Assembly: GCA_946965045.2 (NCBI GenBank)
Contig: OX337229.1
Location: 5,146,001-5,210,000, forward strand
Length of the DNA stretch: 64,000 bases
Origin: Epithemia pelagica
Lineage: Eukaryota > Protista > Bacillariophyta
Direction of reading: 5' to 3'
Notes under the pieces: generated by a model
Database searches by the model: none
Told to the model about the DNA's origin: nothing
Seen by the model: only the letters and a program-made list of their open reading frames with translations
Part shown: positions 3,930-40,116 of the stretch, piece by piece
Position numbering within the stretch: position 1 is the first letter of the stretch
Layout: each line of letters starts with the position of its first letter
Translations under genes and position numbers: made by a program

Positions 3930-5168
3930 TAGCAGATAGCCCCTCCTCCACCCTCCCGTATTCGTATTTGTCGTATGTAGACTTGTAGAGCTTTTAATAA
4001 GGCGTGGCGTTGCCCTAAAACCTAACCCGGATTTATGGAAGTTACACTACTGTTTTACAGTACGAGTTTCAACAAAACAGAAAATAAAAGGCACTCTATT
4101 TCTGATACTGTATCATGTTGACACGAGAACGAGAGAGGGGGGAAGAGCACAGAACAGACCACCCCGAGCTATCAGCATTCAGCATACAGCATGCTCTATG
4201 CTCTTCGACCTTCGACTCGCATTTCGCATGGGTTTCGTCTTTCCAAACTCAATAACTCTTAATGACCGTACAGTGCAAGGGTCTTATTCGGAAGCAGGGG
4301 TCTGATGTCTCATATCCATATATTATGTTTGTAATGGCGGGTCGGACGGTGACGCACGGGGATGCTGATCGTAAACGTGCCAACACTGGGGGAGATCCCG
4401 TTCCATGTGTTCGTTGATTCAATGGAGGGGAAAGAGAAGGGGTCTGAAACGAACATCCGATTCCTCTCTCAGACTTGAGACGCTGTCGGTGTGGTCATCA
4501 CGATTTTTTAACTCTATGGATCAAGGGCAACAACGACCCACTGGTTAGATGGGGTTACAGTCATGGTTGCGTCCGTTGCTCTTCGACTGCTGGGCATCAA
4601 CCACTTTTGGTGTCGCGTTGCACGAGCTTGAATGGTTGTGTCCTCTACCTCCTCCCAAGGGTCATTTCATTTTCACTGATTGGTCTCCTGCTCGTGAAAG
4701 ACAAACCTTGGGTGTCATCTTTAATCACCAATGGTCACCAACACAAGTACAGTTCTTGTGTGGCGGATAATAAGGATGAGCAAAAGAGATGCTGAATCTT
4801 TTCAATGACCATCCAAAATGCCAATCCATTTCATATGGGAGTGATTGATCATGGGTATCATCATCATTTGAATTGTCTCATAAAATCAAAGACGATCAGA
4901 TTTTGATTTGGTCTTTGTCGATTGCTGACTGATTGGAAAACACCTTGTTTTGCCTTCGATATTCTGGTAAGGAAGAATTGTCTTTCCGCCACAGGCAATC
5001 TGTTTCTCATCTCCCTTGATGAGAAGCCCATTGACGTCCCAGGAGTAACACTCTTGTTGTTTCTTTTGTTGGGACTGGTCTGTTTCAGGGCATATTGCTC
5101 TTGTTCTTGATCGTGTCACCCACATTGCCATCCTCTGTACTTTGCACTTCTTGAAGATATCCGCAAAC

Positions 5169-16860: not shown

Positions 16861-17480
16861 TTGTTTCAGCGCGCTATGTTGCCTATGAGCTAGCTGTATC
16901 CTCATGTTATTGTGACGGAAATAGGAGTAGAAAACACACAGCGTTTAGATTGCGCGTATCTTAACAGTTGTTCTGTGAAAGGTCAATGGTTGATTCTTCT
17001 CTTTTAGGTGTTTCAGTTGTCTGGTGGCAATGCTTCTTTGGTCCCTTTTTGGCATGCAGGACCAGTTCCGGTGACATAATATCACCTTGCACCTTGCACA
17101 CTCACGCTCGTGCGGATCGTACAAAGAGCAGACAAGAACACGGAGCAAATTTCGCCGTGCCTTCACAATTTCAACCAGTAGAAGTACCACATTACATACC
17201 CCTAAGAAATGTGATGACAATTTGAACTGCTCCATATTATATGAGAATCATTTCTAGTTTCTTCTCTTGCTAGCATTTTCTTCGGGAATTCCACATACAA
17301 ATCTTCATCGCCATCCCAGCACGCCATTGCTGTTTAGAGAAGCATAAAGGCGGGGGTCAAGAGAGCAGCAATCGCAGCAGCCCCGGTGGAAGGCTGAGTC
17401 GCGGCCGATGTATGCGGATCGTCACAAACGAGCTGGGAGGTACCATCTGCAATCACATTGCAACCTTGATTTTTGCAGGG

Positions 17481-17694
17481 TGTTGGGACCGGTGGACGAG
17501 CAGACCAATTCGGAAGCAAACGATGATGATGAAGATGAATCCGCGACCAAGGCCGTTGAGGAAAAATGGATCTTGGTAGAACGACGTGGCAACGAAAAGA
17601 AAGAACGGAGCATGAGTGCTCATTCTAAGGAGAATACGTTAACCTAAAGAGCTTTATCGTTGCCTTTACAGCACTGCTTGGTGGTTCTCCAACA
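17481..17694 (+). repeat. 5' LTR of Copia no.2
   Basis: TGTTGGGACC...TTCTCCAACA, repeated at 23383-23596. Confidence 0.97.
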
Positions 17695-17708
17695 TATTCT
17701 CCTTAGAA
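17695..17708 (+). promoter_or_regulatory. Non-tRNA primer binding site, complementary to LTR positions 17623-17636
   Basis: TATTCTCCTTAGAA is the exact reverse complement of TTCTAAGGAGAATA in the LTR; it lacks the TGG start of a CCA-end tRNA PBS. The priming role is inferred. Confidence 0.7.
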
Positions 17709-17741
17709 AAACCAATTTTTGAAGGGAACTACGATAGTTAC

Positions 17742-18386
17742 ATGTCTGAAGAACCCTCACGTCTTTCAGTTCTGTTAAACAAATTGACTCAACTGTCAAT
17801 CGAACAACAAGACCGGGTGAATACGGTCCTCCGCCGTCACGAGCACAACGTGCAACAGCGCGAAGAAGCATTCCGTGAAGCCCGAAGAGAGTTGGAAGAT
17901 AATTATCACGCAGAGGTGGATCACGATCGGACAGTCCTTCGAGAAGCCAAGGACCGCATCTTCAACGAGATTCAAGCTCGTCGGAGTGCACTTATTACTG
18001 AAATACAGACAGCGGAACAAGAACCGAGTCCAGCTGTACCTACCGAACTCAACGCCAGCCCCGAAGTATCCAGAGACGAAACAGCAGACCTCGTTGACGA
18101 AATACGTCAACTTGAGGACGGACGCATTGAGTTCGTGTGCCACTATCCGGCCCTACCAGCTAACGCTAGCACCGTTCCCACCAACATTCCCATTGGTACT
18201 CCAGTTTGGATCGTCAACCCACTCAAGTTGGCAGGCATCGTTGAGAGAACATTTTTGAAGGCAGAGGTTGTTGGGATTGGTCGAGGAAGAAAACCTTTCT
18301 ACAAGTTAAAAGTGTGGAATCCAGTCCACAAGAAATACGAAGAACACAAGCGCATCCGCAAGAATCTGGCAGTACGTGAAGTATAA
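17742..18386 (+). CDS. Accessory ORF of Copia no.2 (214 aa; coiled-coil N-terminus, basic beta-rich C-terminus)
   Basis: ATG-initiated ORF inside the element between the PBS and gag; same frame as gag-pol, separated by TAA GCC. Confidence 0.75.
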   Translation: MSEEPSRLSVLLNKLTQLSIEQQDRVNTVLRRHEHNVQQREEAFREARRELEDNYHAEVDHDRTVLREAKDRIFNEIQARRSALITEIQTAEQEPSPAVPTELNASPEVSRDETADLVDEIRQLEDGRIEFVCHYPALPANASTVPTNIPIGTPVWIVNPLKLAGIVERTFLKAEVVGIGRGRKPFYKLKVWNPVHKKYEEHKRIRKNLAVREV

Positions 18387-18389
18387 GCC

Positions 18390-21300
18390 ATGAGCTCCAA
18401 CCGATCCAATACCCGTGATGATGCTCGCCCTGATGCTGCTCCCAGCAGTAATGCATCAGGTGCTCGTAGCCAAAACAATCAAACACGTGGTTCACGGAAT
18501 CGTGGTCGAGGAAACCGAAACAATAACGGATATGGCGGCAACAGCAACAAATTCCAAGGTCAAGAACCTAGTCTTAAGGAATGTACTTTCGATTACTCGG
18601 AAGACCCCCAAGCGAAACGGTACATACGGAATGTGGAATTGCTCGTGGGGTACATTGGGTCGAACTTCGATAAGCACAATATTCATTTTCAACGTGCGGT
18701 AGAACAGTTGCGACTCGATGACCCAGATCCGCCTGATCGACCAAAAGACACAAGCGATGTCATCGCAATGAAAGAATGGGAATTTGCCCACAAAGCACGT
18801 CAAGAACAGATTCTATTATACGAGAACTTCCGTGCTTCCTTGTTCAGTTTGCTCTTAGGCCAATGCACGCCCTTGTTGAAGGACAAGATGAAAGCTAAAG
18901 CCGCCTACGAACAAGTATTTCAAGATCGTGATGGCGTGGCTCTGTTGAGTTTGATTAAACAGACGACTTTCACGTATGACTCAACAAGACTCTATACGGC
19001 TGTGACTCGTGATCGTCTGAAGGAGGAATTCTATGGTTTGCGACGCAAGCAGAATCAGTCGTTGCAGTCGTATTACGAAGTCTTTCGGGCAAAATATAAA
19101 GTCTTGGAGGAACTCAACATCAAACTATACAATGAGGACTTTGCAAAAGAAATCATGAGGGCAAAAAGCAAAACTCGAACCACACCCAACGAGATAGACA
19201 AGACAACAGCTCAAGATCGTTGTGTGGCTGTTCGTTTCATCCGCACATGCGGTGAAAAGGACTATGAGTCACACCTGCAGAACTCTTTCCTTGACGGGAA
19301 CAATCATTATCCGGCAACACTTGCGGATGCTTTCGCGATCATTGATAACCGTATGCACGGTACTCGCCAAGCACAGGGACAAGGACGTCACAACCAAGAC
19401 AGTCAAGGCACCGGAGTGGCATATCATACGCAAGAAAGCGATGACAACACGCTCACGGGAACAACTTTGACCACCACCACTACAACGCAACAGGCTCGTG
19501 ATGGCAACAACGGCGCAGAGGATAGCGCTGCCGGATCAACCGACACAGGTAACAGGGGACATGGATCTGTACCCTCCGTGACTGTTCACAACGATCATGA
19601 ATCAAGTATCTCACCTGCATTCTCTTTCACGTCTACTTCATTACAGGGCGCCGTTCCTCCTAATTGGGTCTTGCTCGACAATCAATCTACGGTCGACATC
19701 ATAGCAAACCCGTCCATTCTAAAAAATATACACACAAGCGAACAACCCATTCTTATTTCAAGTCATGCTGGGAGTCGAGAACTCAACCAACAAGCCTTAC
19801 TGCCCGGGTATGGCCTCGTATGGTTCGACCCCGAGGGCCCAGCCAATATACTTTCTCTCCACCATGCCAAGGCAAGATTTTCAATCCACTATGACAGCGT
19901 AAACGGCAACTCTTTCAAATTGTATGATCCTTCATCTGGGCGATTAAAGCACACGTTCAAACAAAGCCCCGAAGGTCTGTTCTTTCTTGACGTCAACCAG
20001 TTACACCATGGTAGTTTCTTAACTACTGTAAAAGAAAACGAAGAATCTTTCACCCCTCAAGAAGTCAGTAGAGCCAAACTGGCTAGGCGTATACAGGGGC
20101 AGATAGGTCGTCCTGCCACAAGGGAATTCATCAAGATCGTGGAAGGGAATCTACTCCCTAATGTGCCTATCAATAGTCAAGACATCCGGAGAGCCGAGAA
20201 ACTGTACGGTCCTGACCTTGGGAGCCTTAAGGGCAAAACCGTGAGACGCAAGTCGCCTAGTGTGGATACCGAACAAGTAATACCGCCGCCAATCCTGGTG
20301 GAGCATCAAGACGTAACCATGGTCATGGACGTGATGCACGTCAATGGCATACCATTTCTTCTCGCCACCACACTCAAGATCCAATTTGGCACCGTAGACG
20401 CCTTACCTCGTTTAAACGAAGACACTCTGATGGCCTCCATCAAAAAGACTGTGGCTATCCTGCGGAGAGGTGGTTTACGGCCACGCATGTTGTTGTTTGA
20501 CGGCGCATTGGGGTATGATGGATTTGAGCAACGCTTGGCAATGCTGGGTGTCAAACTCAACACCACCGCACAAGATGAACATGTGGGAGCAGCCGAGCGC
20601 TATATCAGGACGGTCAAGGACCGAATGAGAAGCACATACGCTATGCTTCCATTCAAAACTGTACCAAGGATCATGATCATTGAGCTGGCGAAGTTTGCCG
20701 TGTTTTGGCTGAACAGTTTCCCAAAACAAAACGGAATTTCACAAACAATCAGCCCTCGTGAATTGGTAACCGGTGAGAAGATCGATTTTCATCACCATTG
20801 CCGCTTTGAGTTCGGACAATATGTCCAAACACATGAGCAACATGACAACACCATGGCGCCACGGACCATCGGAGCAATAGCCTTACGTCCAACCGGAAAC
20901 AGGCAAGGAAGCTATTACTTCCTCAGTTTGGAAACCGGACGTGTGATTAACAGAAACAGAGCTACTGTTCTACCGATGCCCAACGAGGTGTTAAAGCGAG
21001 TGGAAGAACTTGCACAAGTACAAAACATGATCCCTGGTCTGGCCTTCGGTAATCGTGATAACCGCCCATTGGCCATGGATGCGGACAATCCCTTGTACAT
21101 CGAGGACGACGATGTCAGTTATGGGCCAAACGATGACGACGAGTCGGTTGATGCGCTACGCTACGACGACGAAATCGTTGAAGAAGAATTGGCAGATCTA
21201 GACGAGGAATTGAATCAGCATTCTGATTTCGACGAAAACCAAGGAGTGGGAGCGGTTGAACAGTATGACATTGAAAATGAAGGAGTGGTGGTGCCGGATG

Positions 21301-23549
21301 GAGTGGAGTTGGCATTAGATGGAGAGATGAATGGACCTGAGGAGGAAAGGGGCCCAGCTGAAGGCGAGGCATTGGAAGAGGAGGTAGATGAGGATGTGGA
21401 CGACGCCCATGTGGCGGACATGATGGATGAGGGTCCTGTGGAGGACCTCAACAATATGGAGGTGCCAGTCAACTTGTCCGACGAGTCAATGGAAATAGAG
21501 TTTGGGACCGACGTGGGAAGCGAGGCTGAAGGCGGCCTGTTCGAGAATGCCTTCGACGAACAGCAACAGGAAAGGGAGCCTCAATCCCATGAATACAACC
21601 TCCGCCCAAATCGGCAGCGAAGCTATGCATATCGATTCGGACACAACTTTGTTAGTCTGGATACTCTACCGAAAGGACGGTATGATGGGTACCTGCACAA
21701 AGGGACTGTTTACCTCACAAGCACGGAGGTCAATCAATCTACGCCCCAATATCCTATGAAATATGGACTAAAATTGTTTGGGAATAAAGGAGTGGAGGCC
21801 GTACGTAAAGAAATACAACAGTTGCACGACCGTGGCGTGGTACGAGCAGTGCATCGCAGTGATTTGTCGTGGCCACAAGTTCGTGCGGCCTTGGGCTACC
21901 TTATGTTTCTGAAAAGGAAACGATGCGGTAAAATCAAGGGTCGTGGTTGTGCGGATGGCCGTAAACAACGCTTGTTCATTCCGAAAGAGGACTCTGCGTC
22001 GCCAACGGTATCAACTGATGCCGTCTTCTACACAGCGATCATAGACGCGATTGAACGCAGAGCAGTCGCCGTGATTGATATCCCGGGTGCATTCATGCAT
22101 TCGGATATGGATCCGAACGTGCACATGAAGTTGGAGGGATTGATGGCGGAGCTCTTATTGGAAATTGATCCCGTTGCCTACAAACCCTACGTGACCTACG
22201 AAAAAGGGAAGCCGGTGATTTACATGGAAATGCTAAAGGCCCTTTATGGAACCCTCCGTGCAGCCAGGCTCTTTTGGGAACGACTAAGCGGAGTCCTAGT
22301 CAGCTGGGGTTTTGTGATTAATCCCTATGACTCATGTGTTGCGAATAAATGGATTGATGGGACTCAATGTACCATTACATGGCACATTGATGACCTCAAG
22401 ATTTCCCATGTGAAGGAGGATGTCCTGACCAAGATCATCGAGGACCTTAAAGCGGAATTTGGGAGGCTGGGTGAATTGTCAGTTTCTCGTGGTCGCCGAC
22501 ATGACTACCTCGGCATGTATTTGGATTATAGCGAAGACGGAGTTTTAGAAGTGGACATGCGCCCATATTTGGCCACGATCCTTGATGATCTGCCAAAGGC
22601 GATGAAAGGAAAGGCGCAGTCGCCTGCTGCAAATCATCTGACCATGATCCGAGAGAATGCCACCAAGCTGTCAACCAAAGAAGCCGAGGATTATCACAGC
22701 AGAACGATGCAATTATCGTATCTGGCCCAACGTGGACGGCCTGACATTCGAACAGCCGTAGCGTTCTTAAGTACTCGGGTTGCTAGTCCCGACGTGGACG
22801 ATCAACGCAAATTGACTCGTGTGCTGAAATACCTGCAGTCGAGCTTTGACTTGACGCTTCGGTTGGAAGCAAACCCCGATGGGATTCTAAAATGGTGGGC
22901 AGATGCTTCATATGCGACTCATGCTGATAGCAAAGGTCACAGCGGTGGTTGTATGAGCATGGGACGTGGAGTGGCCCACAGTATGTCAACCAAACAGAAG
23001 CTGGTGTCGAGGAGCTCGACCGAGAGTGAACTAATCGGCATACATGATGTACTCCCGTCACTGTTGTGGAATAGAAATTTTTTGGAAGCGCAAGGCATGA
23101 AAGTGAAAGATGTCATTTTGTTTCAAGATAACAAGAGTGCGATCCTGTTAGCCAATAATGGTCGCCTGTCAAGTTCCAAGAGAACCAAGCATATTAATGT
23201 GAGATATTTCTTTGTGAAGGATCAGATTGAAAAGAAGTTGTTACGCACCGAATTTTGTCTGACAGACGAAATGTTGGCTGATTTCTTCACCAAGCCGTTA
23301 CAAGGGACCTTGTTCTATAAGTTGCGAGATGCAGTAATGAACATTCGAAGCGATAGCCCATTCCATTCCTCACAAAGGAGTGTGTTGGGACCGGTGGACG
23401 AGCAGACCAATTCGGAAGCAAACGATGATGATGAAGATGAATCCGCGACCAAGGCCGTTGAGGAAAAATGGATCTTGGTAGAACGACGTGGCAACGAAAA
23501 GAAAGAACGGAGCATGAGTGCTCATTCTAAGGAGAATACGTTAACCTAA
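18390..23549 (+). CDS. Copia gag-pol polyprotein (1,719 aa)
   Basis: PR WVLLDNQST; IN DVMHV...FDG...AERYIRTVK; RT VIDIPGAF and WHIDDL; RH WADAS, STESE, QDNKS and ADFFTKP; IN precedes RT (Copia order). Confidence 0.97.
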   Translation: MSSNRSNTRDDARPDAAPSSNASGARSQNNQTRGSRNRGRGNRNNNGYGGNSNKFQGQEPSLKECTFDYSEDPQAKRYIRNVELLVGYIGSNFDKHNIHFQRAVEQLRLDDPDPPDRPKDTSDVIAMKEWEFAHKARQEQILLYENFRASLFSLLLGQCTPLLKDKMKAKAAYEQVFQDRDGVALLSLIKQTTFTYDSTRLYTAVTRDRLKEEFYGLRRKQNQSLQSYYEVFRAKYKVLEELNIKLYNEDFAKEIMRAKSKTRTTPNEIDKTTAQDRCVAVRFIRTCGEKDYESHLQNSFLDGNNHYPATLADAFAIIDNRMHGTRQAQGQGRHNQDSQGTGVAYHTQESDDNTLTGTTLTTTTTTQQARDGNNGAEDSAAGSTDTGNRGHGSVPSVTVHNDHESSISPAFSFTSTSLQGAVPPNWVLLDNQSTVDIIANPSILKNIHTSEQPILISSHAGSRELNQQALLPGYGLVWFDPEGPANILSLHHAKARFSIHYDSVNGNSFKLYDPSSGRLKHTFKQSPEGLFFLDVNQLHHGSFLTTVKENEESFTPQEVSRAKLARRIQGQIGRPATREFIKIVEGNLLPNVPINSQDIRRAEKLYGPDLGSLKGKTVRRKSPSVDTEQVIPPPILVEHQDVTMVMDVMHVNGIPFLLATTLKIQFGTVDALPRLNEDTLMASIKKTVAILRRGGLRPRMLLFDGALGYDGFEQRLAMLGVKLNTTAQDEHVGAAERYIRTVKDRMRSTYAMLPFKTVPRIMIIELAKFAVFWLNSFPKQNGISQTISPRELVTGEKIDFHHHCRFEFGQYVQTHEQHDNTMAPRTIGAIALRPTGNRQGSYYFLSLETGRVINRNRATVLPMPNEVLKRVEELAQVQNMIPGLAFGNRDNRPLAMDADNPLYIEDDDVSYGPNDDDESVDALRYDDEIVEEELADLDEELNQHSDFDENQGVGAVEQYDIENEGVVVPDGVELALDGEMNGPEEERGPAEGEALEEEVDEDVDDAHVADMMDEGPVEDLNNMEVPVNLSDESMEIEFGTDVGSEAEGGLFENAFDEQQQEREPQSHEYNLRPNRQRSYAYRFGHNFVSLDTLPKGRYDGYLHKGTVYLTSTEVNQSTPQYPMKYGLKLFGNKGVEAVRKEIQQLHDRGVVRAVHRSDLSWPQVRAALGYLMFLKRKRCGKIKGRGCADGRKQRLFIPKEDSASPTVSTDAVFYTAIIDAIERRAVAVIDIPGAFMHSDMDPNVHMKLEGLMAELLLEIDPVAYKPYVTYEKGKPVIYMEMLKALYGTLRAARLFWERLSGVLVSWGFVINPYDSCVANKWIDGTQCTITWHIDDLKISHVKEDVLTKIIEDLKAEFGRLGELSVSRGRRHDYLGMYLDYSEDGVLEVDMRPYLATILDDLPKAMKGKAQSPAANHLTMIRENATKLSTKEAEDYHSRTMQLSYLAQRGRPDIRTAVAFLSTRVASPDVDDQRKLTRVLKYLQSSFDLTLRLEANPDGILKWWADASYATHADSKGHSGGCMSMGRGVAHSMSTKQKLVSRSSTESELIGIHDVLPSLLWNRNFLEAQGMKVKDVILFQDNKSAILLANNGRLSSSKRTKHINVRYFFVKDQIEKKLLRTEFCLTDEMLADFFTKPLQGTLFYKLRDAVMNIRSDSPFHSSQRSVLGPVDEQTNSEANDDDEDESATKAVEEKWILVERRGNEKKERSMSAHSKENTLT

Positions 23550-23596
23550 AGAGCTTTATCGTTGCCTTTACAGCACTGCTTGGTGGTTCTCCAACA
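23383..23596 (+). repeat. 3' LTR of Copia no.2
   Basis: Direct repeat of 17481-17694. Confidence 0.97.
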
Positions 23597-24380
23597 CAGG
23601 GAACTTCCAAATCGTGAAGTCCCGTTTCGGCCTCGGGGTTGATGTCATCGTGGTCACACAAATCATGGACCGCACGAAGGATACGGAAATTTGCTCCACA
23701 TTCCGTAGCTGCGTCGTTACACTCGTTCAAACACCCATCATTGAGCAAGGCGGTGTAGGCGGCGTTACCACTTCCATCTTCGCAGACGACTGGGTCACAG
23801 AGGTCAAATTCCGGATCGGGTTGACGAAGAATGTGGCAGCCTTCACAAACGTCTTCGTAAACATGAATGCTGTCTTCGACGGGCTTGGGGAGGACATCTT
23901 CCAAACAAAAGTCATGGTGAGTACGAATGATCAAAAAGTTGGTGTGGCATACTTCCGATTCACAATTTTTGCCGCAATTGTTCTCATTCAACTTGGCCAA
24001 GGCGGAAGTCATTTGTTCCTGATCACTGCAATCAATCGTAAATCCATGCTCGGCCGCAGCACAAGCACAGCTCTCCTCGCCGTCATGGTTATGGCCGTCG
24101 TCACCCGAAGCCTCCACCAAATGCTCCCCCTTGGAGAGGATGACAGCAAAGAAAGTGGCTGCAGAGAAGAGCGATGGTTTGCCGAAAATCTTCATGGTCC
24201 AAGTCGAAAGTGTGCTAACAATGAGAGAGTTTTGTGCTTGTGAGAGAAAAAGAGGCTTTTCCCACAAAATCGTGCGATCTTTGGCCAGATCATTTCCCAG
24301 CAGAAAAGGCCTTGTCTCTTGGCCTTGCCAGTCTTGACATTTCTATATTCAATTGCCATCTGTCATACAAGAAACGCTAG

Positions 24381-25221
24381 TGTCTATTCTACCCCGGTAC
24401 TCATATGAGGACAAATCCTCATATGAGTACACTTTCAAAAGAAGAATATCAAATCAATCATGTACTCCTAAGTGGTTTTTAAGTTCAGATTCGTAATCTC
24501 CATACTTGAAAACGTACCCCTTGATATTCTCATGCTTTAATTGTGATGAGTAGTGACGATACAGTATCAAAAACAGAATTCATCCATGTTGGAGCGATGG
24601 TGATTTTCTAAGCTGAGTGTTTGGAGGGGATAAAACAGAAGACAATCAACCTGATGAGTGTTATTATCCCTAGTGTTGATGACCAGTTGTCCTTTGCCTG
24701 ATTGAGGCATCAGATTGAGAGAATTCAGCCAAAACAAGCCTCCATCACCACAGAGGAAAATTCTGAGACCGTAACAGCATTCGACACCAATACAGGGTCA
24801 AATGCGGCGTCTGAGCCTCCTGCACCCCAACACTTCATGTACAGGAAGCACAGACACCTTCAGGGAACCAGGAAAGTGCAGTGGGAGACTCAAATCCGCC
24901 AATGTCTGTGAAGACAGTTGAACTCCCTCGACAAAATGGTTGGATTTGCCCTACATAAACTGGATGGATGCATTTTCCAACACACGTAGTGTCTTGCCAC
25001 ATAAACATAGAACATAATGGTTGATTGTGGTCTATTACTTTTCTATTTTAGTTGTTCATTTTTTTGGTAGAACGGCAGATTCCCATGGTTGGGTTACATT
25101 TTTTGTCGATAGCTTCGTACAAAAGCTACTGTGGTCTACGTAGATATGATTTTAGTAGGATTGTCCTCATATGAGGACAAGCGCTGTCCTCATATGAGGA
25201 CAAACCGGGGTAGAATAGACA
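24381..25221. mobile_element. 841-bp non-autonomous TIR element, superfamily unresolved
   Basis: 17-bp TIR TGTCTATTCTACCCCGG; CTAG on both sides (24377-80 and 25222-25); single CTAG at the empty sites 34191-94 and 41451-54; subterminal CTCATATGAG palindromes. Confidence 0.9.
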
Positions 25222-25625
25222 CTAGAGCTTGTTGACTTTCGACGCGTAAAGTTGGCGAACTTGTAGGAATCACTACGAATGCGTACAGTACCTCGAACCA
25301 GCTGCCGGGATCTCCGGGTACAAAATTATCATACACTACTATCAGCTTCTGTTTTGTCTGTACTGGGTGGAGTGACGTGGCCGATGCTGGCCAGACTTCA
25401 GCGACTGACATTCGAGGTGCGACCGAGCCGCCTCCTCGACGCGAGGCGAGCATCCGATTTTGTTCCCATCGGCATTACGATTCGGATGACCGAATGCAAA
25501 GTGGATGAAGCGTGAGAAGAGCTCACTCTTCTCAGGTCCAGCATCCTTGCAACGACAACGAGACGAGTTCGAGACGATTGCAACGATCTTAGTTAGCTTA
25601 CATCTGCCTTAGCCTTCATCTTACC

Positions 25626-29178: not shown

Positions 29179-30617
29179 TGCCAGGACGGACTGATTGTTG
29201 CTTCATCCTTCACTCCTCTCCCTTCTCCAGACAACTCTCAGTCCGCAAGTAACAGTAGAACAAATATAAATGCAGATGAGTCTCTTTCCTCATCCTCTTC
29301 ATCCATCATTGTCCCCACGTTTCTTCCACCCCAAGCACCCCCTTCATCTTCCGCCAAGCCAAGAATTCCGACCTCGACGAATCCCTTCTTGACGAAGCAC
29401 CTCTCTCATGACTACCCTCGTTTCCCAGACACTCTCCAAGACGAAATCTCTCAGCTGTCAATTGTATCTTTGGACCGTCGTGTCTCTTTTCCGAATGACA
29501 CCGACTCCCTTCACAAGATACGTTCCTTTTCAGTTGAAGATCCCCCATCAAGTCTGCCACGCGCACCCACGACTTCGATCACCCAAGATCCTTCCGTTGA
29601 GTCCAGTCCATCTATAGCCCAATTGAATACCCCCCGCTCCCCAAGTCCCCCAAGTCACGCCACCGAAAATCTACCCTCACAAATTCAGAAAACTCCCCCC
29701 GGTAGTTCTTCTGCAATCATTGGGTCTGATTTCAAAGGAAAGCCTCTTCAGCGGAACATGCAACGATTGGAAGCAGCGAGAAAATCGGATTTGACATTAC
29801 TAGGTGAGTTATCTATTGTTCCTTGCGACGATCCCTCTCTCGAGCCATCCCCCAAGTGCTACCTTCCGAATGACGTCTCCAAGATCTTCTCCAAGCGTTT
29901 GTTCCCACCAAGACTCCAAGACGTGACCCACCCCCTCCAGCTGTCCACGATTCTATCTATCGCTTCGGACACACCACCAACCCCAAAGCCATCACCCTTC
30001 CTCCATGGGATCGATGACAAGTCAGTCATGTCCAATTCGATCCACAACTCACAGCTGATTGCTGGATTCGATCATGAGATGCAACAAGTGTTAGACAGCC
30101 ACCCTGGCTCCGTCATATCACCTGGCTCAGAATTTCGCACAGCCGAAATACTCCGCCCCTTACTCAGCGGCCATCCTTACTGGTCACGCTTCGAGCACAA
30201 CATCATTCACGGTGTCTCTTACCCTCTCACAGCTGAGGAATACGAGCCAGCCAGACTCGCCGAAAACGAGGCAATCCTCGCGTATGGCAATCACGCATCC
30301 GGCAAGAAACACCCAGAGGCTCTCTCCAAAGTTCTTTGTAAGGACGCTGCCAAAGGTTTTTCCCTACCAATAACCTTTGACTGCGCCAGGACAATCAAGC
30401 ACAGCAGGATAAGTCCCATGGGAGTAGCTCATCAACTCGGCATTGACGCAAACGGGACCTCATCCCCAAATTGCGTCTCACCCATGACCAATCCTTCTCC
30501 TTGGGCTTTTGCCCTTCCACCAACGACCTCATTGACCAAGACCGGTTGATTGATTTAGTTTTGGGGCATTGCATCAATCGCATCCTCCACCAGATCGTTA
30601 CGCTTCGTTGACATTAC
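29179..30617 (+). pseudogene. Disrupted, truncated reverse transcriptase N-terminus (DIRS-like)
   Basis: Frame is open from the gag stop; frameshift near 30455; TGA at 30609-11; breaks off at 30617. Confidence 0.7.
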
Positions 30618-30746
30618 GAAGCAGCTCAAGCGCATCAACGGGGTATTCATGGAGTCCCCTTTTTTGAATTCGAAGGAGAGCCCGCGTTTTCTGGTGCTCA
30701 AGATGTCACCACCTTTGTGAAATATCTGCGTCAATATGCATCCTGA
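30618..30746 (+). pseudogene. C-terminal fragment of the DsbA/FrnE-like gene (unit A)
   Basis: Hand translation EAAQAHQRGIHGVPFFEFEGEPAFSGAQDVTTFVKYLRQYAS-stop contains the GVPFF...SGAQ signature. Confidence 0.8.
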
Positions 30747-30888
30747 GAATGATAAGAGTTCTAGGAGAAAGGTGAAAAAGAGTTTAATAATGTAATGACA
30801 TAGTCCCACAAGAGTGTATTATTTGTTGTTTCAGCGCGCTATGTTGCCTATGAGCTAGCTGTATCCTCATGTTATTGTGACGGAAATA

Positions 30889-32856
30889 CTCCCTCCTGAA
30901 AGAAAATACTTCACGCTTTTACAAAAAAAACGATAATTTCACAAGCGAACGTCCTTTTTCCGTAATTTTTTTTTGTTAGAAAGCCCTACTCATTAGCTCT
31001 GTTTTGGTGTATAATTTATATGTTCGATTCTTGCGTCGGAACGAGCTACGACCGTTCAAAAGGCGTGATTTTGAGCATCGGTCTTCAGAGCCCACCGGTT
31101 GACACTTCTATGGCGCCTACGAACACGTCCTCTTCAGGGCGGCCCCCCAGGGCACCAAAGTACAAGACCATGCGTGAAACTGATAAGGTTCGCATCGTTT
31201 CAGCGCTCAATTCCATGGTCAACCAAGGCACCTTTGGCCGTGGTTCCATTTCTTCCATGGCTAGAGAGATGGGTTATGACAGGTCGACTATAAGTAAACT
31301 CTGGAACGGCGCGCGTGTGACACGCGCCACGGGCGTAATTCATTCACCTGAAATTTCAAGAAAGCTTGACAGGCGTGGGCGAAGGCCTAAATTGTCTCCT
31401 TCTACGATTAGAGTAAAGGTAAAAGCCCTTCCGTTGAACGCACGGAACACAAGGCAAAACCTCTCCTTCGCGTTGCGAGTTTCACACACCACTGTGAACT
31501 CGTGGGTGAAGAAAGGGATCCTTCGCACTCACAGGAACATGTTGAAACCGACGCTAACTGAACAGAACAAGCTCTCCAGGCTCTTGATGGCAACATCATT
31601 TGTCAAGGAGAAGGACAACAAGCCAGGTGAGTATGAGTACGAGGATATGCTGGACCTTGTGCACATTGATGAAAAATGGTTTTACCTGTCACAAGATGGA
31701 AAGAGATTTGTGCTTGCAGACGAGGAGGAAAATCCACATCGTACTGTGAAACATAAGAGCCACATCACCAAGGTGATGTTTCTGTGTGCTGTTGCAAGGC
31801 CCAGGTTCATCCCCCACCTGAACAAGTGGTGGGATGGCAAGATTGGCATCTGGCCCATTGGTGAGTGGGTTCCTGCCAAAAGGGATTCTGCTAATCGCCC
31901 GAAAGGTACTCCGGTGTGGAAAAATACCAGTATTACCAGGGATGTGTACCGGTCCCTATTGGTGGAGACGGTATTGCCTGGAATCATGGAGCGGTGGCCA
32001 GTGGAAGACAGAAAAGAAAGGGTGATAAGAATTCAGCAGGATGGTGCCAAGTCTCACATTTCAGAACGTGACCCTGAGTTCCTTGAATTCCTAAAGGATC
32101 TCAAGAATGATGGACAGTTGGATGCAACACTCTACACCCAGTCTCCCAATAGTCCAGATACAAACATCTGTGACTTGGGGTTTTTCAGGGCCATTCAGAG
32201 TGCAAGTCTGATTGTTGGATCAAATGAAAAGGCTTTGATTGATGCCGTGACCAAGGCCTTCAATGAGTATCCCAAAGAAAAGCTGAACAGGACCTGGCTA
32301 ACCCTACAGTCATGCTTCAACATGATCATTGAGGAAGATGGTGGAAATGACTACAAGATCCCCCACATGAATAAGGAGGGTCTTGAACGGATTGGTCAAC
32401 TTCCCACGGTGTTGGACGTCACCGAGGCCTTCACAGCAAACAACAATCTGCATCTACTGGAATAGAAAAACCTAAAGCTAAATGAATACCTGGCCAACCT
32501 CCACTTGATCCAGGAGGTGGCCAAGGGCTACGGCCAATGATTGTCCCTATAGGTAAAGGAATAGGAGTTCTTGTTGTTGCTGTGTGGTTGTTGTTGCGAG
32601 TTTCCTTCATGTGTGTTGTTGGAGGGAGACGAGTGAGTTTTTTCCCATCACTAATCGCCAGGTTGTAGCTGTGGAACCAATGGATCTGGCAAGTGGCACG
32701 TGTCATTGGTTTATGTTCATCTACGAAATCAGGGTGGAGTTCGACTCCGAATGAGCCAGCCGGCCTCCTGTAGACTTGTACCAGAGCCTACGTAATCTTT
32801 TTATGCGACTAAAAAACACAAAAAAAAAGCGTGAAGTATTTTCTTTCAGGAGGGAG
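30889..32856 (+). mobile_element. Intact Tc1/mariner element, 1,968 bp (unit A)
   Basis: Perfect 32-bp TIR CTCCCTCCTGAAAGAAAATACTTCACGCTTTT; TA TSD; empty site with a single TA at 16922-23. Confidence 0.97.
31110..32465 (+). CDS. Mariner transposase, plant-mariner-like, DD43D spacing
   Basis: HIDEKWFY, KVMFL, IQQDGAKSH and PNSPDTNICDLGFF motifs; the ORF is also open from 31020. Confidence 0.95.
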   Translation: MAPTNTSSSGRPPRAPKYKTMRETDKVRIVSALNSMVNQGTFGRGSISSMAREMGYDRSTISKLWNGARVTRATGVIHSPEISRKLDRRGRRPKLSPSTIRVKVKALPLNARNTRQNLSFALRVSHTTVNSWVKKGILRTHRNMLKPTLTEQNKLSRLLMATSFVKEKDNKPGEYEYEDMLDLVHIDEKWFYLSQDGKRFVLADEEENPHRTVKHKSHITKVMFLCAVARPRFIPHLNKWWDGKIGIWPIGEWVPAKRDSANRPKGTPVWKNTSITRDVYRSLLVETVLPGIMERWPVEDRKERVIRIQQDGAKSHISERDPEFLEFLKDLKNDGQLDATLYTQSPNSPDTNICDLGFFRAIQSASLIVGSNEKALIDAVTKAFNEYPKEKLNRTWLTLQSCFNMIIEEDGGNDYKIPHMNKEGLERIGQLPTVLDVTEAFTANNNLHLLE

Positions 32857-36438: not shown

Positions 36439-37877
36439 TGCCAGGACGGACTGATTGTTGCTTCATCCTTCACTCCTCTCCCTTCTCCAGACAACTCTCA
36501 GTCCGCAAGTAACAGTAGAACAAATATAAATGCAGATGAGTCTCTTTCCTCATCCTCTTCATCCATCATTGTCCCCACGTTTCTTCCACCCCAAGCACCC
36601 CCTTCATCTTCCGCCAAGCCAAGAATTCCGACCTCGACGAATCCCTTCTTGACGAAGCACCTCTCTCATGACTACCCTCGTTTCCCAGACACTCTCCAAG
36701 ACGAAATCTCTCAGCTGTCAATTGTATCTTTGGACCGTCGTGTCTCTTTTCCGAATGACACCGACTCCCTTCACAAGATACGTTCCTTTTCAGTTGAAGA
36801 TCCCCCATCAAGTCTGCCACGCGCACCCACGACTTCGATCACCCAAGATCCTTCCGTTGAGTCCAGTCCATCTATAGCCCAATTGAATACCCCCCGCTCC
36901 CCAAGTCCCCCAAGTCACGCCACCGAAAATCTACCCTCACAAATTCAGAAAACTCCCCCCGGTAGTTCTTCTGTAATCATTGGGTCTGATTTCAAAGGAA
37001 AGCCTCTTCAGCGGAACATGCAACGATTGGAAGCAGCGAGAAAATCGGATTTGACATTACTAGGTGAGTTATCTATTGTTCCTTGCGACGATCCCTCTCT
37101 CGAGCCATCCCCCAAGTGCTACCTTCCGAATGACGTCTCCAAGATCTTCTCCAAGCGTTTGTTCCCACCAAGACTCCAAGACGTGACCCACCCCCTCCAG
37201 CTGTCCACGATTCTATCTATCGCTTCGGACACACCACCAACCCCAAAGCCATCACCCTTCCTCCATGGGATCGATGACAAGTCAGTCATGTCCAATTCGA
37301 TCCACAACTCACAGCTGATTGCTGGATTCGATCATGAGATGCAACAAGTGTTAGACAGCCACCCTGGCTCCGTCATATCACCTGGCTCAGAATTTCGCAC
37401 AGCCGAAATACTCCGCCCCTTACTCAGCGGCCATCCTTACTGGTCACGCTTCGAGCACAACATCATTCACGGTGTCTCTTACCCTCTCACAGCTGAGGAA
37501 TACGAGCCAGCCAGACTCGCCGAAAACGAGGCAATCCTCGCGTATGGCAATCACGCATCCGGCAAGAAACACCCAGAGGCTCTCTCCAAAGTTCTTTGTA
37601 AGGACGCTGCCAAAGGTTTTTCCCTACCAATAACCTTTGACTGCGCCAGGACAATCAAGCACAGCAGGATAAGTCCCATGGGAGTAGCTCATCAACTCGG
37701 CATTGACGCAAACGGGACCTCATCCCCAAATTGCGTCTCACCCATGACCAATCCTTCTCCTTGGGCTTTTGCCCTTCCACCAACGACCTCATTGACCAAG
37801 ACCGGTTGATTGATTTAGTTTTGGGGCATTGCACCAATCGCATCCTCCACCAGATCGTTACGCTTCGTTGACATTAC
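35788..37877 (+). mobile_element. Duplicated DIRS-like fragment (gag C-terminus and RT N-terminus) in unit B
   Basis: Copy of 28528-30617. Confidence 0.85.
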
Positions 37878-38006
37878 GAAGCAGCTCAAGCGCATCAACG
37901 GGGTATTCATGGAGTCCCCTTTTTTGAATTCGAAGGAGAGCCCGCGTTTTCTGGTGCTCAAGATGTCACCACCTTTGTGAAATATCTGCGTCAATATGCA
38001 TCCTGA
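37878..38006 (+). pseudogene. C-terminal fragment of the DsbA/FrnE-like gene (unit B)
   Basis: Copy of 30618-30746. Confidence 0.8.
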
Positions 38007-38148
38007 GAATGATAAGAGTTCTAGGAGAAAGGTGAAAAAGAGTTTAATAATGTAATGACATAGTCCCACAAGAGTGTATTATTTGTTGTTTCAGCGCGCT
38101 ATGTTGCCTATGAGCTAGCTGTATCCTCATGTTATTGTGACGGAAATA

Positions 38149-40116
38149 CTCCCTCCTGAAAGAAAATACTTCACGCTTTTACAAAAAAAACGATAATTTC
38201 ACAAGCGAACGTCCTTTTTCCGTAATTTTTTTTTGTTAGAAAGCCCTACTCATTAGCTCTGTTTTGGTGTATAATTTATATGTTCGATTCTTGCGTCGGA
38301 ACGAGCTACGACCGTTCAAAAGGCGTGATTTTGAGCATCGGTCTTCAGAGCCCACCGGTTGACACTTCTATGGCGCCTACGAACACGTCCTCTTCAGGGC
38401 GGCCCCCCAGGGCACCAAAGTACAAGACCATGCGTGAAACTGATAAGGTTCGCATCGTTTCAGCGCTCAATTCCATGGTCAACCAAGGCACCTTTGGCCG
38501 TGGTTCCATTTCTTCCATGGCTAGAGAGATGGGTTATGACAGGTCGACTATAAGTAAACTCTGGAACGGCGCGCGTGTGACACGCGCCACGGGCGTAATT
38601 CATTCACCTGAAATTTCAAGAAAGCTTGACAGGCGTGGGCGAAGGCCTAAATTGTCTCCTTCTACGATTAGAGTAAAGGTAAAAGCCCTTCCGTTGAACG
38701 CACGGAACACAAGGCAAAACCTCTCCTTCGCGTTGCGAGTTTCACACACCACTGTGAACTCGTGGGTGAAGAAAGGGATCCTTCGCACTCACAGGAACAT
38801 GTTGAAACCGACGCTAACTGAACAGAACAAGCTCTCCAGGCTCTTGATGGCAACATCATTTGTCAAGGAGAAGGACAACAAGCCAGGTGAGTATGAGTAT
38901 GAGGATATGCTGGACCTTGTGCACATTGATGAAAAATGGTTTTACCTGTCACAAGATGGAAAGAGATTTGTGCTTGCAGACGAGGAGGAAAATCCACATC
39001 GTACTGTGAAACATAAGAGCCACATCACCAAGGTGATGTTTCTGTGTGCTGTTGCAAGGCCCAGGTTCATCCCCCACCTGAACAAGTGGTGGGATGGCAA
39101 GATTGGCATCTGGCCCATTGGTGAGTGGGTTCCTGCCAAAAGGGATTCTGCTAATCGCCCGAAAGGTACTCCGGTGTGGAAAAATACCAGTATTACCAGG
39201 GATGTGTACCGGTCCCTATTGGTGGAGACGGTATTGCCTGGAATCATGGAGCGGTGGCCAGTGGAAGACAGAAAAGAAAGGGTGATAAGAATTCAGCAGG
39301 ATGGTGCCAAGTCTCACATTTCAGAACGTGACCCTGAGTTCCTTGAATTCCTAAAGGATCTCAAGAATGATGGACAGTTGGATGCAACACTCTACACCCA
39401 GTCTCCCAATAGTCCAGATACAAACATCTGTGACTTGGGGTTTTTCAGGGCCATTCAGAGTGCAAGTCTGATTGTTGGATCAAATGAAAAGGCTTTGATT
39501 GATGCCGTGACCAAGGCCTTCAATGAGTATCCCAAAGAAAAGCTGAACAGGACCTGGCTAACCCTACAGTCATGCTTCAACATGATCATTGAGGAAGATG
39601 GTGGAAATGACTACAAGATCCCCCACATGAATAAGGAGGGTCTTGAACGGATTGGTCAACTTCCCACGGTGTTGGACGTCACCGAGGCCTTCACAGCAAA
39701 CAACAATCTGCATCTACTGGAATAGAAAAACCTAAAGCTAAATGAATACCTGGCCAACCTCCACTTGATCCAGGAGGTGGCCAGGGGCTACGGCCAATGA
39801 TTGTCCCTATAGGTAAAGGAATAGGAGTTCTTGTTGTTGCTGTGTGGTTGTTGTTGCGAGTTTCCTTCATGTGTGTTGTTGGAGGGAGACGAGTGAGTTT
39901 TTTCCCATCACTAATCGCCAGGTTGTAGCTGTGGAACCAATGGATCTGGCAAGTGGCACGTGTCATTGGTTTATGTTCATCTACGAAATCAGGGTGGAGT
40001 TCGACTCCGAATGAGCCAGCCGGCCTCCTGTAGACTTGTACCAGAGCCTACGTAATCTTTTTATGCGACTAAAAAACACAAAAAAAAAGCGTGAAGTATT
40101 TTCTTTCAGGAGGGAG
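38149..40116 (+). mobile_element. Intact Tc1/mariner element (unit B)
   Basis: Copy of 30889-32856 in identical flanks, so it was duplicated with the segment rather than inserted independently. Confidence 0.97.
38370..39725 (+). CDS. Mariner transposase (unit B)
   Basis: Same protein as 31110..32465. Confidence 0.95.
   Translation: MAPTNTSSSGRPPRAPKYKTMRETDKVRIVSALNSMVNQGTFGRGSISSMAREMGYDRSTISKLWNGARVTRATGVIHSPEISRKLDRRGRRPKLSPSTIRVKVKALPLNARNTRQNLSFALRVSHTTVNSWVKKGILRTHRNMLKPTLTEQNKLSRLLMATSFVKEKDNKPGEYEYEDMLDLVHIDEKWFYLSQDGKRFVLADEEENPHRTVKHKSHITKVMFLCAVARPRFIPHLNKWWDGKIGIWPIGEWVPAKRDSANRPKGTPVWKNTSITRDVYRSLLVETVLPGIMERWPVEDRKERVIRIQQDGAKSHISERDPEFLEFLKDLKNDGQLDATLYTQSPNSPDTNICDLGFFRAIQSASLIVGSNEKALIDAVTKAFNEYPKEKLNRTWLTLQSCFNMIIEEDGGNDYKIPHMNKEGLERIGQLPTVLDVTEAFTANNNLHLLE

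Follow-up and report, generated by a model that had tools for sequence, protein, structure and literature searches.

Self-priming, in which minus-strand synthesis starts from a piece of the element's own transcript rather than from a host tRNA, has been established experimentally for the LTR retrotransposon Tf1 of S. pombe and is inferred for the Tf1/sushi group of Ty3/gypsy elements. For Tf1, both the cleavage and the RNA 5' end have been demonstrated experimentally, and the duplex is 11 nt long. To our knowledge, experimental proof of self-priming exists for Tf1-type Gypsy elements only, while among plant Copia elements it has been predicted in one lineage.

The prediction for plants concerns the TAR lineage of Ty1/copia and was made by Neumann et al. 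2019, who also cited earlier proposals for Houba and Osr-1 (PMC6317226). Operationally, a self-primer was recognised there by at least 10 bp of complementarity to the 5' LTR, beginning 0-5 bp after the LTR (PMC6317226). The fungal GalEa Copia elements display a 'Conserved Hairpin Site' in place of a primer-binding site (PBS), and the authors found no LTR complement (PMC5445492). In diatoms, the founding paper on the CoDi elements (Maumus et al. 2009) makes no mention of a PBS or primer (PMC2806351), and no report of self-priming retrotransposons in diatoms was found in the literature.

Here, we describe a diatom element located in a window of 64,000 nucleotides, i.e., the whole stretch of Epithemia pelagica DNA that was analysed, and all positions refer to this window unless a contig is named. 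The element is a recently inserted and probably still competent member of Ty1/copia that, in our judgement, quite probably primes its minus strand with a piece of its own transcript and not with a host tRNA.

Organization and coding capacity of the element

The element is enclosed by direct LTRs with the termini TGTTGG...CCAACA, and a 5-bp target-site duplication surrounds both (Table 1). Such TG...CA termini and a duplicated target site of 5 bp agree with a Ty1/copia element. The lack of differences between the LTRs, the target-site duplication, and open reading frames (ORFs) all speak for recent activity. The initial annotation had spoken of identical LTRs and an intact ORF; the former stands, with 0 differences over 214 bp, while the latter has to give way to two ORFs split by a stop codon. 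The AAAGGAG(TG) adjoining the 3' LTR probably acts as the polypurine tract.

Table 1. Features of the Ty1/copia-type element and their positions in the window (a slash marks the LTR boundary)
Feature	Position	Strand	Remarks
Target-site duplication CAGGG, 5' copy	17476..17480	+	repeated at 23597-23601
5' LTR, 214 bp	17481..17694	+	identical to 23383-23596
Initiator-like motif GCTCATTCT	17618..17626	+	(G)CTCA directly 5' of the primer segment in most families
Predicted self-primer TTCTAAGGAGAATA, first 14 nt of R	17623..17636	+	exact complement of 17695-17708; covaries with the PBS in relatives
Rest of R and U5, 58 nt, loop closed by the primer-PBS duplex	17637..17694	+	fold and alignment A1
Predicted primer-binding site TATTCTCCTTAGAA, abutting the LTR	17695..17708	+	without TGG; complement in no listed tRNA gene
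ORF1, 214 aa, upstream cistron kept in paralogous families	17742..18386	+	no Pfam family
ORF2 polyprotein, 1719 aa: gag-like, protease, integrase, RT, RNase H	18390..23549	+	
Integrase region, ORF2 aa 570-900	20097..21089	+	AlphaFold model and Foldseek
Copia-type reverse transcriptase (RVT_2), active site WHIDD	21921..22589	+	Pfam PF07727; alignment
Putative polypurine tract AAAGGAG(TG), adjoining the 3' LTR	23374..23382	+	AGGAGTG/TGTTG kept before the 3' LTR in relatives
3' LTR, 214 bp	23383..23596	+	
3' LTR copy of the primer segment, also coding (..HSKENTLT*)	23525..23538	+	
Target-site duplication CAGGG, 3' copy	23597..23601	+	

The reverse transcriptase (RT) encoded by ORF2 was recognised as RVT_2 (PF07727) at aa 1178-1400 (E = 1.8e-8; 34.7 bits versus a cut-off of 31.6), and according to the alignment the catalytic DD is retained within WHIDD. 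Throughout the lineage of the element, the active-site motif reads W-H-(I/V)-D-D as opposed to the usual YxDD (ORF2 aa 1331-1340, at about 22380-22409), and YVDD was encountered only in P0116, the most distant relative examined. Searches at the sequence level for the integrase and other domains returned no match, whether against Pfam with a relaxed E-value, NCBIfam, or PDB (queried with the sequence as well as with a profile). Using AlphaFold, a model of ORF2 aa 570-900 was built on 11 homologues, and in a Foldseek structure search it matched cores of retroviral integrases as well as two-domain integrases (probability 1.0, E about 1e-7, TM at most 0.77 per target). An integrase fold upstream of an RVT_2 RT amounts to the Copia domain order, and together the RT and the modelled integrase confirm the element as Ty1/copia-type. 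A CCHC zinc knuckle was found in none of the ORFs of the window, while relatives carry zf-CCHC at aa 210-400; the N-terminus of ORF2 is an RG-rich stretch.

ORF2 extends 167 nt into the 3' LTR, so that U3 and the 3' copy of the 14-nt predicted primer are coding, and its stop lies 11 nt past this copy. In several paralogous families, a stop codon comes right after the 14-mer (ACG TAA or TAG; alignment A1), and the conserved CGTA following the primer thus reflects a coding constraint and lies outside the pairing.

An arrangement in two cistrons was observed in the window and in seven other elements (L005, L010, L012, L014, L016, L018, and L028). Across families, ORF1 is about 210-240 aa long, shows no known domain and a coiled-coil-like N-terminus, and its 3' end either lies shortly upstream of the ATG of the ~1700-aa polyprotein or overlaps it (TAA gcc ATG here, GCATGA overlaps elsewhere). 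The frame relation of ORF1 to ORF2 varies between families, hence simple readthrough does not account for the arrangement. Relatives with a named source were found in two diatoms, Fistulifera solaris and Fragilaria crotonensis, and the Fistulifera relative carries one single ORF.

Two further features were noted in the neighbourhood. Just downstream of the element, at 24368-25234, 31-nt inverted repeats that are 90% complementary lie 805 nt apart and enclose several TCCTCATATGAGGA palindromes, which may mark a small terminal-inverted-repeat element. In addition, pairs of ORFs of equal length (386 aa and 481 aa) at 29389-32465 and 36649-39725, spaced 7260 nt, suggest a tandem segmental duplication.

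Complementarity between the LTR and the predicted primer-binding site

The sequence directly following the 5' LTR, TATTCTCCTTAGAA (17695-17708), and TTCTAAGGAGAATA within the LTR (17623-17636) are exact reverse complements of one another. There is no spacer between LTR and PBS (0 nt) and no TGG-type PBS, and by the operational definition cited above the site is that of a self-primer, with 14 of 14 bp complementary at offset 0. Allowing for one mismatch (C17637/A17694), the pairing runs to 18 nt. The initial annotation had described the 14-nt match and the absence of a TGG-type PBS, both of which were borne out by direct comparison, as well as a 3-bp extension (GTT/AAC) past the mismatch, which is present in this element but is not kept by its relatives.

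The earlier estimate of about 1e-6 for a chance match also agrees with the present calculation, as an anchored 14-mer match in the 214-nt LTR has a probability of about 7e-7 (uniform) to 2e-6 (composition-based), and none of 20,000 LTR shuffles gave a match above 11 nt. In the window, the 14-mer has three matches versus 0.01 expected. The duplex is present in both the minimum-energy and the centroid folds of 17622-17745 (z = -3.3), and the loop at 17637-17694 contains a conserved TTGCCTTTACAGCAC (fold and alignment A1).

The LTR arm of the duplex lies in an initiator-like context. TCAH+1W has been proposed as the diatom initiator, where +1 is the base after TCA, and the TCATT pointed out previously proved to be a real match to this proposal, read as GCTCATTCT at 17618-17626 (PMC4686930). 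Similarly, TCATTCT is the most frequent INR in the stramenopile Phytophthora (PMC3599244).

Covariation of predicted primer and binding site in related elements

The exact 14-mer occurs in 51 copies in the 60.5-Mb genome, all at LTR or PBS positions of related elements. The only other copy of the exact family (G000:C3:1716858-1731367; L002 and L004) has LTRs that are 97-98% identical to those in the window; with 14.5 kb between its LTRs and an interrupted ORF, this copy probably carries an insertion. Diverged families in the same genome (48-65% protein identity) retain the layout with other primer sequences. For example, the primers of diverged paralogues are TTCTAAGGAGATTA, TTCTATTGGAAATA, TTCAATGGAGTTTA, TTCTTTTTAAAATA, and TTCTATCAACAATA, each exactly complementary to the 14 nt after its own LTR. 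The elements examined included one located 402 kb downstream (L009).

Outside this genome, the same layout was found in Fistulifera solaris (L074) and in Fragilaria crotonensis (L075), with the copy of the primer still present in the 3' LTR, as well as in ENA assemblies (L076-L080), Logan contigs (L082, L084, L165, and L166), and dozens of metagenome contigs. The lineage is abundant in several genomes and environmental assemblies. Clean LTRs were absent at a second Fragilaria locus (L081), and no pair was detected in four 700-nt pieces (L065 and L071-L073, from the 35% and 27% protein-identity tiers plus one 55% element), where mis-targeting or another primer is possible.

Counting only pairs found inside one LTR, 43 distinct primer/PBS sequences were obtained. 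The primer is 14 nt long in 32 of these and ranges from 13 to 17 nt. It follows directly after TCA in 28/43, and in four more the A of CTCA also pairs; an initiator-like TCA is found immediately 5' of the primer in 32 of the 43 families, and about a quarter are without TCA. The 3' end of the LTR is always ACA (CAACA, TAACA, GAACA, and once CACA), most pairs end at the CAACA of the LTR, and the loop between the paired arms measures 46-130 nt across families.

Alignment A1, a MAFFT alignment of 16 families built without reference to pairing, displays covariation at 14/14 pairs, and 224/224 cells are Watson-Crick with not a single G-U. None of 500 shuffles reached the observed values, and shifting the partner columns lowered pairing to 37-56%. 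The initial annotation had named compensatory changes among relatives as a check on its proposal, and this check turned out in its favour. RNAalifold applied to A1 recovers the LTR-PBS helix only; a conserved extra stem in R-U5, like the U5-IR of Tf1, was not recovered by this program. Mismatches between primer and PBS were seen in three copies only, two of which have truncated or broken ORFs (L013, G000:C5:2572100-2572187, and L020, G000:C16:2961705-2961789), while in the third (L090) the LTRs are merely 93% identical.

Proposed mechanism of self-priming

Considering the 43 distinct pairs, the full covariation, and the lack of a tRNA match, tRNA-independent self-priming as put forward in the initial annotation is the best explanation of the LTR-PBS complementarity. 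Transcription would start at the initiator-like GCTCATTC in the 5' LTR, directly after GCTCA or at its last base, at about 17622-17623 (A17622 or T17623), which would place the 14-mer at the 5' end of the RNA. The first 14 nt of the RNA would then fold back onto 17695-17708 and close the 58-nt R-U5 loop, a step for which sequence complementarity, fold prediction, and covariation provide support. By analogy with Tf1, the RNase H of the element itself or another nuclease would cut where the duplex stops on its 3' side, leaving a 3'-OH opposite the last base of the LTR, from which the RT would extend. Extension from the edge of the duplex would explain the observed geometry, in which LTR and duplex terminate at the same position. 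Finally, synthesis of plus-strand strong-stop DNA would copy the primer and thereby rewrite the PBS in every cycle, which would account for Watson-Crick pairs throughout and the lack of G-U.

Alternative explanations for the complementarity

Another possibility, though an unlikely one, is that the 3' end of the genomic RNA primes. In this case, R would end at the 14-mer with poly(A) addition or cleavage right after it, and the terminus would anneal to the PBS either in cis or on a co-packaged RNA. The primer would at the same time be the acceptor R, and priming and first-strand transfer would be coupled, merging into one step. We know of no LTR element for which such a fusion has been described.

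The ends of assembled contigs may serve as a proxy for RNA ends, yet they give conflicting hints. Three public sequencing runs hold the element itself; all are DNA assemblies, and no ends were obtained from them. The ends of four contigs without flanking DNA (L082, L083, L089, and L110) fall between -6 and +17 nt relative to the 3' primer copy. The end of L082, a Logan contig of a relative, lies 1 nt past the 3' primer copy, and that of L083 falls 6 nt short of this position, both in favour of a priming RNA 3' end. Positions 1-26 of L082 equal 5080-5105, and this terminal redundancy of 26 nt spans -11 to +1 around the primer; the overlap of closed cycles in Logan (L165 and L166) is 30 nt, as for k=31. 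The short overlaps of L082 (26 nt) and L110 (15 nt), which are not k-mer-sized, may therefore represent transcript ends, i.e., the R region. If L082 is a transcript, R would measure 26 nt, starting 11 nt upstream of the primer and ending right after it, and this redundancy is the only hint for a priming 3' end. In addition, the last base is A in 38 of the 43 primers, a frequent context for cleavage.

On the other hand, L089 and L110 reach 12-17 nt beyond the primer. L089, ending at +12, fits a primer at the RNA 5' end with a short R, and L110, whose head and tail share 15 nt (+2 to +17), is compatible with an RNA beginning at the primer on condition that its 5' end has been truncated or already cleaved. 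Moreover, priming by the 3' end leaves unexplained why the complementarity starts exactly at the conserved initiator-like TCA, and it needs the removal of a poly(A) tail or extra bases to set a 3'-OH at the edge of the LTR. Self-priming from the RNA 5' end is thus preferred.

It could also be argued that the duplex is a structural or regulatory RNA, with a role in packaging, dimerisation, or translation control, and that something else primes. Covariation by itself reveals that a pairing is selected and not what it is used for, and U5-leader stems near the PBS do occur in retroviruses. However, the paired arm sits at the sole place possible for a PBS, adjoining the LTR without a spacer in all families, and neither an alternative PBS nor a TGG is present. 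A structural stem should furthermore allow G-U, while the exclusively Watson-Crick cells of alignment A1 are expected of a site that is recopied from its primer. A purely structural duplex is accordingly considered improbable, more so than a priming 3' end.

Priming at 17695-17708 by a host tRNA, half-tRNA, or other host small RNA, as in copia, Ty5, and Bianca, is very improbable, even though half-tRNAs are a known non-canonical mode of priming in Ty1/copia (PMC6317226). ARAGORN found no tRNA in the window. The search of the host nuclear and organellar sequences for a complement of the PBS, which the initial annotation had suggested, returned element sites only: all exact genomic matches are LTR or PBS sites of elements, none lies in the organelle contigs, and singletons with one mismatch are no more numerous than in a reversed-pattern control (18 hits), with none at a listed tRNA gene. 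While this whole-genome pattern search was complete and included the organelle contigs, the tRNA list is partial, with 63 of 1840 candidates scored. Host tRNAs cannot account for 43 distinct PBS sequences, each of them matching the LTR of its own element. Membership in the class of half-tRNA-primed Copia elements (copia, Ty5, Osser, and Bianca), in which the PBS corresponds to an internal stretch of tRNA-Met or tRNA-Ile, was likewise rejected, as there is no match at the listed tRNA genes and the PBS differs between families. Chance or an assembly artefact is refuted by the probability of about 1e-6 for a single element and by the repetition of the layout in dozens of independent families and assemblies.

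Implications

Self-priming in this element would extend to a whole diatom Copia lineage, with unusually clean comparative support in the form of 43 covarying pairs and no wobble pairs. Priming without a tRNA would then have either originated or persisted in Copia and Gypsy elements alike. For annotation, a simple LTR-complement rule could be used for diatom elements, which tests for a tRNA-based PBS would wrongly fail. The young, apparently intact copies may offer material for testing the mechanism in a transformable diatom.

Comparison with known systems

Among diatom elements, the element resembles CoDi in being a Copia-type LTR retrotransposon of a diatom, a likeness of host range, with relatives annotated in Fistulifera solaris and Fragilaria crotonensis. 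It shares with the fungal GalEa elements a Copia background without a tRNA-type PBS and differs from them in its exact, covarying LTR complement.

Like Tf1/sushi elements, it carries a PBS directly after the 5' LTR that is complementary to its own LTR-encoded RNA and not to a tRNA, and the primer is predicted, from sequence, to be located at the start of the transcript. Unlike Tf1, it encodes an RVT_2 RT with the integrase upstream, while Tf1/sushi elements display RVT_1 and a downstream integrase (gypsy order). The type of RT and the domain order thus exclude the element from the Tf1/sushi clade, although it probably works like Tf1. It also differs in its 14-nt duplex (11 nt in Tf1), in its diatom host, in that cleavage is predicted by analogy, and in that no conserved extra stem was recovered.

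The element also resembles the plant TAR elements such as Houba and Osr-1, which are likewise Copia-type, carry a post-LTR sequence complementary to their own 5' LTR, and have a mechanism that, as here, is predicted in silico. The element satisfies the operational definition used for TAR, a likeness by feature (PMC6317226). In contrast to TAR, the host is a diatom and not a land plant, U3 and the primer segment overlap the polyprotein ORF, and the case for self-priming rests on 43 covarying pairs across species. The initial annotation had taken self-priming to be undescribed for Copia, and the TAR prediction of Neumann et al. 2019 contradicts this (PMC6317226). Rather than a new mechanism, the sequence comparisons lend good support to the extension of a known one to a new host group and a further Copia lineage.
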